DNA of 64,000 nt from Bugula neritina (lineage: Eukaryota; Animalia; Bryozoa), in NCBI GenBank assembly GCA_964035545.1, contig OZ037772.1, forward strand, positions 6,556,889-6,620,888, written 5' to 3'. The notes beneath the pieces were generated by a model. That model ran no database searches. It was not told the DNA's origin and saw only the letters and a list, made by a program, of their open reading frames with translations. This document shows positions 31,147 to 56,617 of the stretch, in pieces. Every line of letters begins with the position of its first letter. The first letter of the stretch is position 1. Both the position numbers and the translations under genes were made by a program.

Positions 31147-34100
31147 CTAATGTCTAGCGCGACGTCTACGCTGCCGTTTATGCCGCCGATGCCGGCGTAT
31201 AGATTGATAAACTCTTTGTAGAGTGTGCACGTGGCTAAGGTCAGCCTGGCACTCGATTTCCGACATTCTGAATCGAGACTCGTACGTTTCAATCAACCCA
31301 TCCTCTTCTAGAGCTCTTTTATATTTACAGTTACTGTTTATAATACCAGCGATCCCTTCGCTGTTTGAACTGTTTGTATATAGCGGATTAGTGTAAATGT
31401 ATTGCCCAGTCTCTGCGTTACTTAGCAACCTACAATCAGTAAACAAATATACAACTAGTTGAAACAATTTTCTATTCAAATATAAAGAACTTTTATGGTA
31501 TTACCAGATAATGCACTCTTAAAGTAGAACTAGTGGTTCTTTTACATTCCACGACTAATACTCATGTTTTCTGGTTTAAAAATGGCCTTCGAAGATTTTA
31601 GACAGCCATATACATAGTTAGTTAGCATAAATACATGCAGTGCTCTCTCTGTATGTAACGATTCTCGTTCTCACGTAGTTCCAAAGGTCACGAGAAGGGC
31701 TTGGACCCCTGTTTTGTGGCTTATGTTTGTGTGTTTAGGGCCAAAATGACTAAATTAACGATCCTTAAGTTAAATCAGGTATTCTGCTGTGCCACAAATT
31801 AAAGTGTTTTGGACCAGCAGCTTAAAATGAGATACAGAGGGGGAACTTGGTTAATCAATTATTGTTTAATGTTAATATTATAACACATTAAGCTAATATT
31901 ACATTCTAACTAACCTTTAAATTCAAGCTACAAGTTAATACTTATACTTAATACTAATATTTAGTTCAGTACTATATTATAATATATATATATTATAATA
32001 TATATATATTATAATATATATATTATAATATATATATATATTATATCAATATTCATATGGGAATTTTTTTTAGGAAAAGCTTTTGGTACTAACAATGAAA
32101 TATTTTAGTTCAACTAAAATCAACCATCCCAAAAGTTATTCTAGCATTTAACTCAAATATACTCACTCTGATTGCATATGAGACTGAGAGGTGGAGCAGA
32201 GGAGTGATTCCAGAAAACACTTTATTGCATCATAGTCTGAACGCATTTCCAGTTCTACCAGGTTTATAACTGATGCTTGATGGTCTATAATTATCAAATA
32301 TTAATAAGTTAACCAATTATCAAAATCATTTGTCACATTTAATGAATTTAAAAGCAGGAAAATATTATACTTAAAATGCTTAGAGTTTGTAACAAGGAAA
32401 CTAATGATAAATTAAGTAATCTTTCATTAAATCAAGTGTGTGTGTGTGTGTGTGTGTGCGCGCGTGCGTTCGTGCGTGTGTGTGTGTGTGTGTGTGCGCG
32501 CGTGCGTTCGTGCGTGTGTGTGTGTATGAGTGTACGTGCGTGTGTTATAGTTATTCATTATAACAACAATATTAATGCAATCCCCTGCTAAATATTGGAT
32601 AGTAAACTTGTATTATACTAGTAGAAAGACCTTCAAAATCTTGATGCAATATTATAGTAAGTGTTGGCCTTGAATTGAAATAATCTGGTTTATTGATACA
32701 AAACTTAAAGTTCTTGTTTTCCGATATATTGGCAGGTCTGGTGTCTTCAGAACAGATGGCAAATCTGACTTACCCAAGTACAGGGATGAGGAGAGGTTGT
32801 CATTATGTGGAACATGGAGTTGTCTGCCCATCACTAAATAGGTAAAATTAGCACCAAACAGTTGGCAGTGTTTCTTCTTCTTGTAGTATATAAACAACTT
32901 TTGACCTGCAAACAAGAAGCAGTTCTTTTCTGACTACAGTTTTTGTTTTCTTTATTGGTGTGCAGTTAAAATATTCTAATGCTTTGTAAATTAAATTAAA
33001 GTCTGCCATGGTGCCTCGACTTCAAATCATCACATTTCTTATCAACTAGTCAAAAACTTCATCAACTAAAGGAAAATTGAGATAGCCTAAGCTCTTTAAA
33101 TTTTTTAATAAAAAAAGGTTTGGGGTACAGGTTGAATTTTTTTGCTAGAACATAACTTCTTTTGCTACATTTCTAATCTAGAACAAAGGCTTTTCTCAAT
33201 ATCTCCATTACCGCACCTACCTCATTGAAATAGATTGCATACACACTTTTCTGCCAATTTTTTAAGATGTTATAAATTTTAAAATAATTAATGAAAGTTA
33301 TCTATAGACTGGTGAAACATTTTTGTCTATAACTCAATTTAAAACTAGTGAAAACAATTGACATTGATTACTAAATTTTAATTTTTGAGTGCACAGTTTC
33401 TCACCAGTATCCAAGTGAATGTTCCCATAAGATCCTTCTACCACCACCTCATCAACAAAGTATCCATTCACTTGACCTTGACTCCCCAATACTTTGACCT
33501 TGAAAGCATATCTCGCAGCGAGGTAAACTCTGGCTAGGCTGAGAGTTGTCTTCTTTGTAGACTGAGTTCTTAATCGCTTACAGCTGCTGGATATAAAAGG
33601 TTACGATAAACAAGAAATTGAAATGGGTAGATAAACACAATGCATATAATTGAAATTTTCATAGACTAAGTGTGATCAGTCACTTTATATAGTTTCTATT
33701 TATAACAGCTGTGTGCATGCAACAGTTTTTTAATAGAATCCCAAAGCATCAAACAAATGTGTGCTGCGCTTATAAATAATATAGTTTCAGCTTGGCTGTA
33801 TGGGTAAGAAAATTTTTTTACTTATAATGAATATCTTGCAGTTATTAAACACTGAAATAAGGAAATACTAAAAACTGGGCAAAAGTTTGCTTTTCTAAAC
33901 AAAGCCGTTGCTAAGTAACATTGTTATAAAGCCGGCCAATCAGTAGCCTACCTGGCTAGCTCTCTGAAAACCAATCAGAATTATTGAAGGAAAACAGTGT
34001 CTTTACCTCAAAGCTCCTTCTGTGCAAAGACATCCGTGTTGAGAGCAGATGTGATCACTATACGGAGTCTGAGTGTGCAGGTTGTAGAACTCAAGGCAGA

Positions 34101-55100: not shown

Positions 55101-56617
55101 CTTAAAGACGGGTTTACTAAACATTGTTAAAAGACATCCAATGAACAACTTTAGAGCAAATAAAACTGGTCTTAAGAAAACAGAAAGACTACCTACTCCT
55201 TTATGCTCGAAGAGTAATTATTTACTTAACCAAGCCAATACAGATGCACAGAAGCTATTGTCAGTAAACAAACGGAGAGTTTAATTGAGTCTTCATGTGA
55301 CACAAATGCATAGAAATTTCCTAGGCTGAAGGGTCAATATTCATATCAATTATCAGCTGGAAGTCACGCTGGTCTAACTGCAAGTTAAGACTCAAACTGA
55401 GAACAAATCAATAACATTAAGTGATAATATATATACAGAGCTGATCCTAGCACTAATATCATAGCTATACTTTAGATACTTTCTAGCCTACAGGACCTTA
55501 TACCAAATGTCTGCACGATTATTGGGATGTGTAGCACTTTTAGCTGATCAACTTTTTACTAGCTAAATATAAAATTCATGCAACTATAAGTTTGCAAAAG
55601 CTTTCCAACATTTTAGAAACAAATACAACTGCACGAATAACGTCAATATATTATTATAACTAATATTTAATAACTTTAGCTTTACTCCAAAATTTATTTT
55701 GAAGTGGCAAGGGGGGGGGGAGTTTGGAAAGGAATAAGAGGATCATATACAGGAGATACAGAATATGTTTAGAAATTGCTTTTAAACCTGCTATTTATTT
55801 GGAAAGCAGCTGCTAATTGGGTGAACGTGCCGTAGACAGCTTTATCACTATTCAATATGACATATGAACAGATGGTGAAATATTTAATACCTTCACTTCT
55901 TTTCTTACTGAATAATTAGGTGAGATTAGACTGTTGTTGAATCTTAAACTATTTAAGGCATAACATCTGGTTATAACTTTTCTTTGTTTGCAGCCTTTAA
56001 CCAGAATTTATGCAAAAAACCCAAATGTGTATGATTTTGGCAATACCTGAATAATTAGCATATATATGATATTAGGCAGGATTATCACTACAGGTGTAAT
56101 GGATTAGAAGATTGTTATACATATATTACTGGTTATTGGGTACTTGAAGAAATAAAGGTGTGAAGAGGTGGTATTCTTGTGTAATTATTCTTTTCCTAGT
56201 TTCGCCCAAAAAGTATAGTTTTATGTAAAATGCTAGTGGGTGCTCTAAGCCTCCTTATACTTGGGATGAAGCATTGTAAAGTTGCCATTTAATGCTGAAA
56301 TTTTGCCATGAATACAGTTCAATACTTTTCCAGACTTAAAATAATGAGTAAAAATTGTAAATTTAGTGAGTTATAAAAACCTTCTATACCTACAACAAAA
56401 ACCATGCCTTAGAATATTATAATCTGTAATGCAGTTTGTAAAACACTGAAGATACTATGTTGTAATTTACATATAGTTCTTACCCATGTATTTGTAGAGA
56501 TCCGTCTCCGGTTGGTAAAATACTATCTTGATACTGTAAAGGAAATGAGCAATTGCATACACTGACCAAAACAGCTATTATCCACAATGACTCCAAGTGC
56601 TTATAAAGATTATCCAT
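31147..56617 (-). CDS. Secreted complement C3/alpha-2-macroglobulin (TEP) superfamily protein lacking the thioester domain, ~1386 aa
   Basis: 25 in-frame GT-AG exons: 56617-56484, 50948-50767, 49829-49653, 49091-49018, 46543-46409, 44822-44780, 44274-44187, 43821-43740, 43398-43302, 42636-42515, 42170-42003, 41662-41495, 40912-40715, 40070-39915, 39557-39100, 38634-38400, 37770-37555, 37228-37074, 36337-36170, 35239-35044, 34200-34007, 33586-33405, 32905-32774, 32284-32167, 31429-31147 (4161 nt, no internal stops). Signal peptide; MG-domain-like motifs QYTPG, FTDGNG, VTADMFP, QYRPGD, LPEHW, LPSYSINDW..FGL, EGEQFQIQISV; MG8-like CKGFRL, LRICYR, IDVESFTGY; C3-type anchor FCLEFY..ICSQHGCLCTEG; C345C-like YAFKVKV, YLVMG. 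The first exon and two acceptor choices (43821 vs 43857; 36337 vs 36331) are less certain. Confidence 0.82.
36388..36596 (-). mobile_element. tRNA-derived SINE family 1
   Basis: Reverse complement of the family consensus. Confidence 0.85.
43488..43735. repeat. Imperfect (ACC)n/(GGT)n trinucleotide repeat, intronic
   Basis: Begins immediately after the GTAAGT donor (43739, minus strand) of the C3-like gene. Confidence 0.95.
48338..48963. repeat. ~625-bp imperfect (TG)n microsatellite, intronic
   Basis: Seen directly. Confidence 0.98.

Follow-up and report, generated by a model that had tools for sequence, protein, structure and literature searches.

A bryozoan complement C3-like gene without a thioester domain in Bugula neritina

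Background

Can a complement C3-like gene lose its thioester domain (TED) and still be maintained by selection? The question is raised by a gene on the minus strand (56617-31147) of a 64,000-nucleotide stretch of the Bugula neritina genome (GenBank assembly GCA_964035545.1, contig OZ037772.1, positions 6,556,889 to 6,620,888), which is called the window below and in whose coordinates unlabelled positions are given. The original prediction, made from the letters of the window, described a C3-like gene from which the entire TED and most of CUB were missing, a genetically encoded counterpart of the fragment C3c. We favor, with a probability of roughly 0.6, the reading that this is a single-copy, expressed and selectively maintained bryozoan gene descended from a three-chain C3/C4-like ancestor, that it has lost the anaphylatoxin domain (ANATO), nearly all of CUB and the whole TED in the germline, and that its product would be a three-chain, non-covalent scaffold.

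In the thioester-containing protein (TEP) family, the mechanism of activation, conformational switch and covalent capture is built around the CUB-TED unit. To our knowledge, all described C3, A2M and TEP members keep this unit, even those without a reactive thioester. C5, Drosophila Mcr and similar TEPs without an active thioester resemble the bryozoan protein in that covalent attachment is not possible, but in them the loss is confined to the thioester motif and the TED fold persists, whereas the entire domain is gone from the bryozoan protein. Phrase searches of the literature for a TED-less TEP returned only statements that cobra venom factor (CVF) is without the domain. According to a survey of 56 species, which does not mention bryozoans, the three-chain C3-like type is the more ancient form, and C3-like genes retain the full set of 13 domains, CUB and TED among them, apart from some gastropod forms that have lost ANATO and the alpha-beta site (PMC8960428). 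A 2024 survey lists Bugula neritina among its screened genomes, and the part of its text that was searched holds no further mention of bryozoans (PMC11312191).

The thioester domain is absent from the gene

TED and nearly all of CUB are absent from this gene in the germline, and RNA joins the flanking exons directly. The motif G[CS][GA]E[QEN] is absent from all frames of the window. The canonical TED DNA of two paralogues of the same genome, which read PYGCGEQNM and PYGCAEQTM and served as positive controls, was compared with the window by tblastx and gave chance matches only (all E >= 0.13). Over the whole 216-Mb assembly, Pfam TED_complement (PF07678) matched on contigs C1, C2 and C4 and not on C8, the contig of the window. 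The predicted absence of a thioester domain is thus borne out by motif, by similarity and by profile.

At the position of CUB-TED-CUB there is instead a single exon of 155 nt, or 51 codons (exon 18, 37228-37074), together with about 30 linker residues, a part that is disordered in the AlphaFold2 (AF2) model, with a predicted local distance difference test score (pLDDT) below 40. Read directly, exon 17 ends in DVKNIPLK before a gt donor; exon 18 opens after ag with VSSLIFEEE and ends in QQRCKG before gtgagc; and exon 19 opens after ag, runs through FRLKVDHW and ends in RICYR before gt. The C-terminal half of exon 18, NLQLKMRFNKEDNQQRCK (37129-37076), is conserved, its motif being kept in five other taxa. 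The introns on the 5' and 3' sides of the small exon measure 326 and 736 bp, as originally given.

Logan contigs of three sequencing runs were placed on 34000-39999, namely RNA-type run X1 (a 'metagenomic RNA-Seq' library), RNA-type run X2 and DNA run X3. Contigs of X1 and X2 carry the joints 39915/39557, 38400/37770, 37555/37228, 37074/36337, 36170/35239 and 35044/34200, all of them CT..AC, which is GT..AG on the minus strand. The two junctions on which the prediction turned, at either side of exon 18, are therefore found in RNA-type contigs exactly where they had been drawn. In one 1372-nt contig (X2, record 7), five exons follow one another with nothing between them: the MG7 exon (MG, macroglobulin domain), the 51-codon exon, two MG8 exons and the anchor exon. 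None of these joints was seen in the DNA run, which is contiguous over 34000-39999. Word depth in X1 was about 95-200 in exon bins and near 0 in introns save repeats. In a run of 260 Mbase, the transcript contigs reached a word depth of about 130-190, which suggests that the C3-like mRNA is abundant, word depth being a rough measure. In exons, the RNA contigs are about 95% identical to the window, with differences at about 5% of positions, and therefore come from a sibling lineage under the same organism label rather than from the sequenced individual.

The same comparison bears on the repeats. The 36400-36600 segment of the 736-bp intron is a tRNA-derived repeat resembling a short interspersed nuclear element (SINE), with a word depth of about 300,000-560,000 in X1 and X3, so that it belongs to a very high-copy family. 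A second, smaller depth spike lies at 34600-34800. Both introns had been described as partly SINE; the description fits the 736-bp intron, while the 326-bp intron holds a tRNA-like stretch without a depth spike.

An assembly or annotation artefact, in which TED exons had been collapsed or placed elsewhere, is the least probable of the readings considered here and close to negligible. Nothing was found in its favor, and it is contradicted by the RNA contig that joins the flanking exons directly, by the short intervals in an independent B. neritina assembly, on a Watersipora chromosome and in three metagenome or Sequence Read Archive (SRA) taxa, and by the lack of any TED match on contig C8. The RNA joint across the gap and the short intervals elsewhere likewise agree with the earlier argument that the flanking introns do not hide CUB and TED exons.

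The loss extends to the anaphylatoxin domain, which had not been remarked upon before. The first furin-type site, RKRR, stands only about 20 residues ahead of the A2M domain, which leaves the gene without an anaphylatoxin domain, and ANATO gave no match in the whole genome at E <= 1.

The gene is intact and conserved among bryozoans

The predicted uninterrupted open reading frame of about 1386 residues was reproduced by a frame check. The 25 exons of the chain, between which every intron is GT-AG, sum to 4161 nt, that is 1386 codons plus the stop, and a codon walk across all junctions met no in-frame stop.

A phmmer search with the A2M exon against 1.84 billion representatives returned 13 matches, of which the informative ones were XP_067940962 of Watersipora subatra and a cluster holding KAF6037769 of B. 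neritina. Further homologous-protein searches (with XP_067940962, KAF6037769 and residues 95-150 of XP_067940962, the last aimed at a 671-aa N-terminal model of B. neritina) were limited in length, so carry little weight, and returned XP_067940962 only. KAF6037769 and XP_067940962 map exon by exon and in the same order onto 39302-31150, and in both of them MG7 is followed by the small exon and then directly by MG8. The gene is single-copy in the genome. Its public models are labelled 'uncharacterized'.

Long stretches of the window are 80-88% identical to B. neritina assembly GCA_010799875.2, and the lineage of the window therefore differs from that of GCA_010799875.2. Beyond that assembly and Watersipora, metagenome and SRA contigs of at least three further taxa (L002/L003/L005/L007; L012; L013) hold the A2M, MG7 and small exons within about 1.3 kb, with the small-exon motif NLxLKMRYNKxDNQxRCKG. 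L002/L005 and L013 extend to the FRLKVDH exon within about 1.7 kb, and L004 and L014 reach the MG7 exon only. Taken together, these sequences show the same architecture, with introns too short for a TED, in at least five further taxa. The deletion is thus shared with related genomes, for which the original prediction had proposed a search.

Selection was gauged against the B. neritina GCA_010799875.2 locus (L015). Relative to it, introns are 87% identical with 4% gaps, and exons are 93-98% identical and gap-free except for the exon 15 linker. Exons 15-25 contain 85 synonymous and 27 non-synonymous changes, a ratio of non-synonymous to synonymous rates (dN/dS) of 0.08. The small exon 18 has eight synonymous changes and one non-synonymous, exon 20 has 11 and none, and exons 20, 21, 23 and 24 have synonymous changes only. 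The N-terminal exons as first modelled gave a dN/dS of 0.28, a figure that includes a mis-modelled repeat. The protein of exon 21 is 100% identical to KAF6037769 and 72% identical to Watersipora, and the Watersipora orthologue as a whole shows 49% protein identity with the same exon order.

These figures decide against a decaying relic that is transcribed without function, which we regard as highly improbable. Extreme divergence from other TEPs and the fragmentation of both public annotations would suit such a pseudogene, but the 1386-codon frame is intact, dN/dS is 0.08 with several exons changed only synonymously, and the exon order is kept in Watersipora and further taxa. With its full frame, its splicing in RNA and the architecture kept in other bryozoans, the gene is intact, as had been predicted. 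The pseudogene, misassembly and hidden-TED-exon readings were accordingly rejected on the frame, dN/dS, the RNA joints and the short intervals across taxa.

Family placement by sequence and structure

The spliced model was searched exon by exon, and KAF6037769 (P0014, 624 aa) and XP_067940962 (P0006, 760 aa) were used as spliced proxies for the C-terminal part; structure prediction and profile work were carried out on these two proteins and on exons, never on the joined 1386-residue model.

The gene is supported as a member of the A2M/TEP superfamily, which confirms the first placement. The Pfam A2M domain (PF00207) was recovered on the A2M exon as searched (38358-38663) at 26.8 bits, above the cut-off of 21 (E 4.8e-6). 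In the exon-by-exon Pfam scan, A2M alone stood above the cut-off; A2M_BRD was weak (E 0.013, exon 14), NTR gave E 0.077, and MG2, MG3, A2M_recep and NTR were not recovered. On XP_067940962, A2M and NTR were both below threshold (NTR E 0.014). The conserved exons of the N-terminal MG array, about 600 residues, gave only weak matches, correctly ordered, among them one to MG4 in the Watersipora equivalent of exon 11 and a faint one to A2M_BRD in a 671-aa B. neritina model. The domain profile expected beforehand was therefore found in part: A2M is present and TED is not, while A2M_recep was not found, NTR fell below threshold and the MG domains were weak.

Profiles and predicted structure place the gene more closely. 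A profile of KAF6037769 and XP_067940962 searched against the PDB had complement C4 as its best match in two collinear stretches, the A2M domain and C4 residues 1550-1687, and in the latter the anchor and the C345C-like domain were aligned with their cysteines matched. A seven-taxon MG6b/MG7 profile ranked human C3c alpha' fragment 1 first (E 0.0016) and also found CD109, CVF, C4 and TEP1; in the C3c alignment, the invariant cysteine of EAFCF (37740-37726, exon 17) falls on that of NPAFCS. The AF2 model of KAF6037769 has a mean pLDDT of 60 and is confident for residues 20-155 and 390-520, with pLDDT of 80-92 in the MG7 exon, 78-92 in the C345C exons and 69-83 in the C-terminal helix. Foldseek with this model against the PDB returned, among the best 50 matches, only C3, C3b, iC3b, C3c, C5, CVF and C4b chains (best E 2.8e-18). 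In VIA-align superpositions, model residues 1-157 lie on C3 752-935 (Z 12-13, rmsd 3.3-4.0 over about 147 residues), and residues 397-528 lie on the C345C domain of C3, 1525-1663 (Z 12, rmsd 3.3-3.4 over 127-128 residues). The best 50 Foldseek matches, the C345C superposition and the anchor cysteines support, on predicted models, a grouping of the gene with C3, C4 and C5. The assignment to the C3 branch by a C345C-like end is upheld, and the proposed comparison of predicted structures gave C3-like folds for MG6b/MG7 and for C345C.

Between these two confident parts lies the MG8-like region, which is identified by its position and by the alignment of its last strand with C4. Pfam A2M_recep (PF07677) matched neither the exons nor XP_067940962, a profile built from the small exon and MG8 found no sequence in the PDB, and in AF2 the region is strand-rich with pLDDT of 50-59 or lower (50 when KAF6037769 residues 236-535 were modelled alone). 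FRLKVDH is presumably the first MG8 strand, corresponding to 'FDLKV' of C3, which we take as a lead only. The cysteine pattern is presumably that of MG8 as well.

The other TEPs of the genome provide the contrast. Canonical TEPs, with a TED reading GCGEQ or GCAEQ plus A2M_recep, lie on contig C4 (4.536-4.565 Mb, a tandem array), contig C2 (17.63 Mb and 20.13 Mb) and contig C1 (18.58-18.60 Mb). They share the A2M domain and an MG-type core with the present gene and differ from it in having TED and A2M_recep and no C345C-like sequence downstream. No similarity to the anchor or C345C was found downstream of four canonical TEP genes; the frame of one closes a short way past its A2M_recep exon, and another is followed by the next tandem TEP. 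The genome's NTR matches at C1:14.2 Mb and C5:1.74 Mb are not adjacent to any TED-bearing locus. A canonical C3 was not detected in the genome at the search sensitivity used, a point that goes beyond the original prediction. In the tandem array of thioester-containing TEP genes (C4:4536000-4565000), one gene reads GCAEQ, and the MG1/MG2 exons of another TEP gene (L016:4241-4954) start about 4 kb past the A2M_recep exon of one gene.

Descent from C3 has to be weighed against another origin, in which an A2M- or iTEP-type gene lost its TED and gained an NTR domain separately by exon shuffling. In favor of it, all canonical TEPs detected in the genome are without C345C, the sequence resembles no TEP closely, Pfam NTR scores under its threshold, and the ESM Atlas, whose neighbours are all TED-bearing TEPs at lead-level scores, ranks a CD109-like protein first in its feature search, level with C3 and C5. 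The MG8-C345C anchor, however, has the cysteine spacing of C3, C4 and C5, the best 50 structural matches all belong to C3, C4, C5 and CVF, C3c is the best sequence-profile match, and two RxxR sites fall on or close to the beta-alpha and alpha-gamma positions (the second presumably in the first MG8 loop, as in C4). We consider this origin improbable and retain descent from a three-chain C3/C4-like ancestor.

Processing sites and possible roles of the product

Two conserved furin-type sites and a basic C-terminal extension were added to the description of the gene. The first site, RKRR (39167-39156, exon 15), is RKRR in Watersipora and RSKR in L005. The second, RKKR (36246-36235, exon 19), stands between FRLKVDH and PRHSLRICYR and reads RKRR in B. 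neritina, RWKR in Watersipora, RKRR in L002 and RKKR in L013; it presumably occupies the same MG8 loop as the alpha-gamma site of C4, a placement that we take as a lead. Ahead of the first site, a Ser/Thr-rich, indel-prone linker (about 39524-39261) accounts for most of the 39 gap positions that separate exon 15 from its B. neritina counterpart, and is followed by a conserved LPEHWF motif (39215-39198; FFPERWF in L005). Past C345C, the protein continues for about 100 residues, in which helices are predicted, and ends in a polybasic tail, RRHRRHKRQRRRRARH (31197-31150); both the tail and the preceding DLSHVY...YQSIRR motif are kept in Watersipora.

Under the favored reading, the protein would be secreted as a precursor, which a furin-type convertase would cleave twice: ahead of MG6b, at RKRR, and within the first MG8 loop, at RKKR. 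The cuts would yield three disulfide-linked chains of about 735, 235 and 400 residues, matching the beta, alpha'1 and alpha'2 chains of C3c. Without TED there can be neither target acylation nor a TED-driven conformational switch, and the product would thus be a constitutive, non-covalent MG-ring scaffold. Binding may occur through C345C, the Ser/Thr-rich linker and the conserved polybasic C-terminal helix, and the protein would most likely serve as a humoral binder of anionic surfaces or as an opsonin-like factor for them.

The closest comparisons are C3c and CVF. Like them, the bryozoan protein would combine an MG1-8 ring with C345C, without ANATO or TED, its three predicted chains approach those of C3c in size, and C3c, iC3b and CVF chains are among its best structural and sequence matches. 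The known forms are cut from a TED-containing precursor, whereas the bryozoan gene itself is without these parts; CVF keeps CUB, while the bryozoan protein retains only about 50-80 residues there. The Ser/Thr-rich linker is a further difference, as is the C-terminal extension, which is about 100 residues long and includes the polybasic tail. Factor B uses the free C-terminus of C345C on C3b. With the extension following C345C, this free C-terminus is not preserved. Three-chain invertebrate C3-like proteins and vertebrate C4 share C345C, the anchor cysteine pattern and two RxxR sites with the bryozoan protein, which differs from the surveyed C3-like proteins in the absence of ANATO, CUB and TED (PMC8960428).

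The main rival accepts the same architecture and holds that the protein was co-opted as a component of extracellular matrix, cuticle or adhesive, its mucin-like linker and polybasic tail serving attachment to matrix or substrate. The indel-prone linker, the conserved tail and the seemingly abundant mRNA agree with it, and since no canonical C3 or ANATO was detected in the genome, there may be no complement cascade for the protein to serve. Against this, MG ring, anchor and C345C are under strong constraint (dN/dS 0.08), which would be unusual for purely structural filler. We judge a matrix or adhesive role unlikely, and continue to prefer a C3-derived humoral scaffold.

Several points weigh against that preference. 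Exons 1-7 (56617-44187) with the signal peptide come from the gene model only, and the choice of exons 2-7 is tentative. Full-length transcription from 56617 is a prediction, both public annotations reaching only the C-terminal half; these annotations are fragmentary, GCA_010799875.2 splitting the gene into a 671-aa and a 624-aa model (KAF6037769), and XP_067940962 of Watersipora starting inside the equivalent of exon 15, with conserved N-terminal exons in the 10 kb upstream. The RNA runs carry the label 'RNA?', and their lineage is about 5% diverged from the window. The N-terminal MG domains gave weak matches only (MG4 E 0.17, A2M_BRD E 0.013), and MG8 is unconfirmed by Pfam, PDB sequence search or a confident model. 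The RKRR site follows an FPE.W-like motif, and is thus not exactly at the beta-alpha junction of C3. Cleavage, secretion, chain composition and any binding are what we infer from these features.

Gene model and surroundings

The gene model was obtained by two dynamic-programming passes over splice sites and codon usage and corrected by RNA and cross-species conservation. All exons lie on the minus strand. Annotations were compared over L015:1-9821 and 10001-17816 for B. neritina and over L001:1-10000 for Watersipora.

Exon 1 (56617-56484) holds the start codon, in an open frame with a GT donor, and a predicted signal peptide (56617-56549), judged by eye from a hydrophobic core followed by CNC. 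Exons 2-7 (50948-50767, 49829-49653, 49091-49018, 46543-46409, 44822-44780 and 44274-44187), which were drawn from splice sites and codon usage, would encode the putative N-terminal MG domains. In the comparison with L015, 46543-46409, 44822-44780 and a mini-exon not used in the model, 46140-46125, are 93-94% identical without gaps; exon 44274-44187 was unscored, and exons 2-4 fall outside L015. Exons 8-14 (43821-43740, 43398-43302, 42636-42515, 42170-42003, 41662-41495, 40912-40715 and 40070-39915) make up the rest of the MG-domain half and show collinear amino acid conservation with Watersipora (L001) and the taxa of contigs L005, L007 and L012. Exons 10, 11, 13 and 14 are gap-free against L015, and exons 8, 9 and 12 as finally drawn were left out of the scoring.

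Exon 15 (39557-39100), its acceptor joined in RNA, carries the linker, LPEHWF and the first furin-type site, and exon 16 (38634-38400), with an RNA-joined donor, carries the A2M domain, comprising MG6b and the start of MG7. Both junctions are seen in RNA for exons 17-20: exon 17 (37770-37555) completes MG7; exon 18 follows; exon 19 (36337-36170) holds FRLKVDH (36336-36316), an acidic linker, the second furin-type site and PRHSLRICYR, which opens the MG8-like part; and exon 20 (35239-35044) is the MG8-like core, with SYYIDVESFTGY and, further on, WCCFS. Exon 21 (34200-34007; acceptor joined in RNA) contains the end of MG8 and the C3/C4/C5-type anchor, with DFCLEFY at 34104-34084 and ICSQHGCLCTE at 34050-34018. 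The C345C/NTR-like domain and the start of the C-terminal extension are encoded by exons 22-24 (33586-33405, 32905-32774 and 32284-32167), which are collinear by tblastn with KAF6037769 and XP_067940962. Exon 25 (31429-31147), also placed by tblastn, encodes the remainder of the extension, with its predicted helix and polybasic tail, and the stop.

Two elements of the first dynamic-programming model were discarded. An 84-nt exon at 36953-36870 was refuted by the RNA joint 37074/36337, and a version of exon 8 that ran through a (GGT)n repeat to 43526 was dropped for a GTAAGT donor at 43739 and the conserved exon 43398-43302. The repeat is a (GGT)n-type microsatellite of about 250 bp (43735-43490) that begins a few bases downstream of the exon 8 donor and is indel-rich against L015; the glycine-rich pseudo-exon of the first model arose because this microsatellite stays open in frame.

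Intron 4 contains a compound (TG/CA)n microsatellite of about 770 bp (48262-49036), which causes a spike in GC skew at 48-50 kb. An intron stretch of about 480 bp (47240-46760) matches between the two Bugula lineages at 92% identity or more and without gaps; it has no coding-like frame, and may be either a conserved non-coding element or an overlooked feature. A tRNA-Cys(GCA) gene lies on the minus strand at 60884-60955, about 4 kb upstream of exon 1. The downstream neighbour in L015 (19243-24658, minus strand) is an FMN-dependent dehydrogenase gene resembling hydroxyacid oxidase, on the strand opposite to the C3-like gene; its position in the window is estimated at about 24-30 kb.

Conclusions

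The strong purifying selection on the MG ring, the anchor and C345C implies that the C3c-like body by itself performs a function on which selection can act. A more speculative and rather doubtful extension is that cheilostomes dropped canonical C3 entirely and kept only this germline-encoded 'constitutive C3c', a thioester-independent effector that would attach electrostatically through its polybasic C-terminal helix. If true, it would constitute a new functional class in the TEP superfamily and a natural experiment on what an MG ring with C345C does without TED. The public annotations of the gene can be flagged as fragmentary, split in B. neritina and truncated at the 5' end in Watersipora. 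For students of complement evolution, a natural TED-less C3 becomes available in which CUB-TED is deleted from the gene itself. Because bryozoans are missing from the published C3 surveys (PMC8960428, PMC11312191), the gene also bears on the remodelling or loss of complement in Lophotrochozoa.

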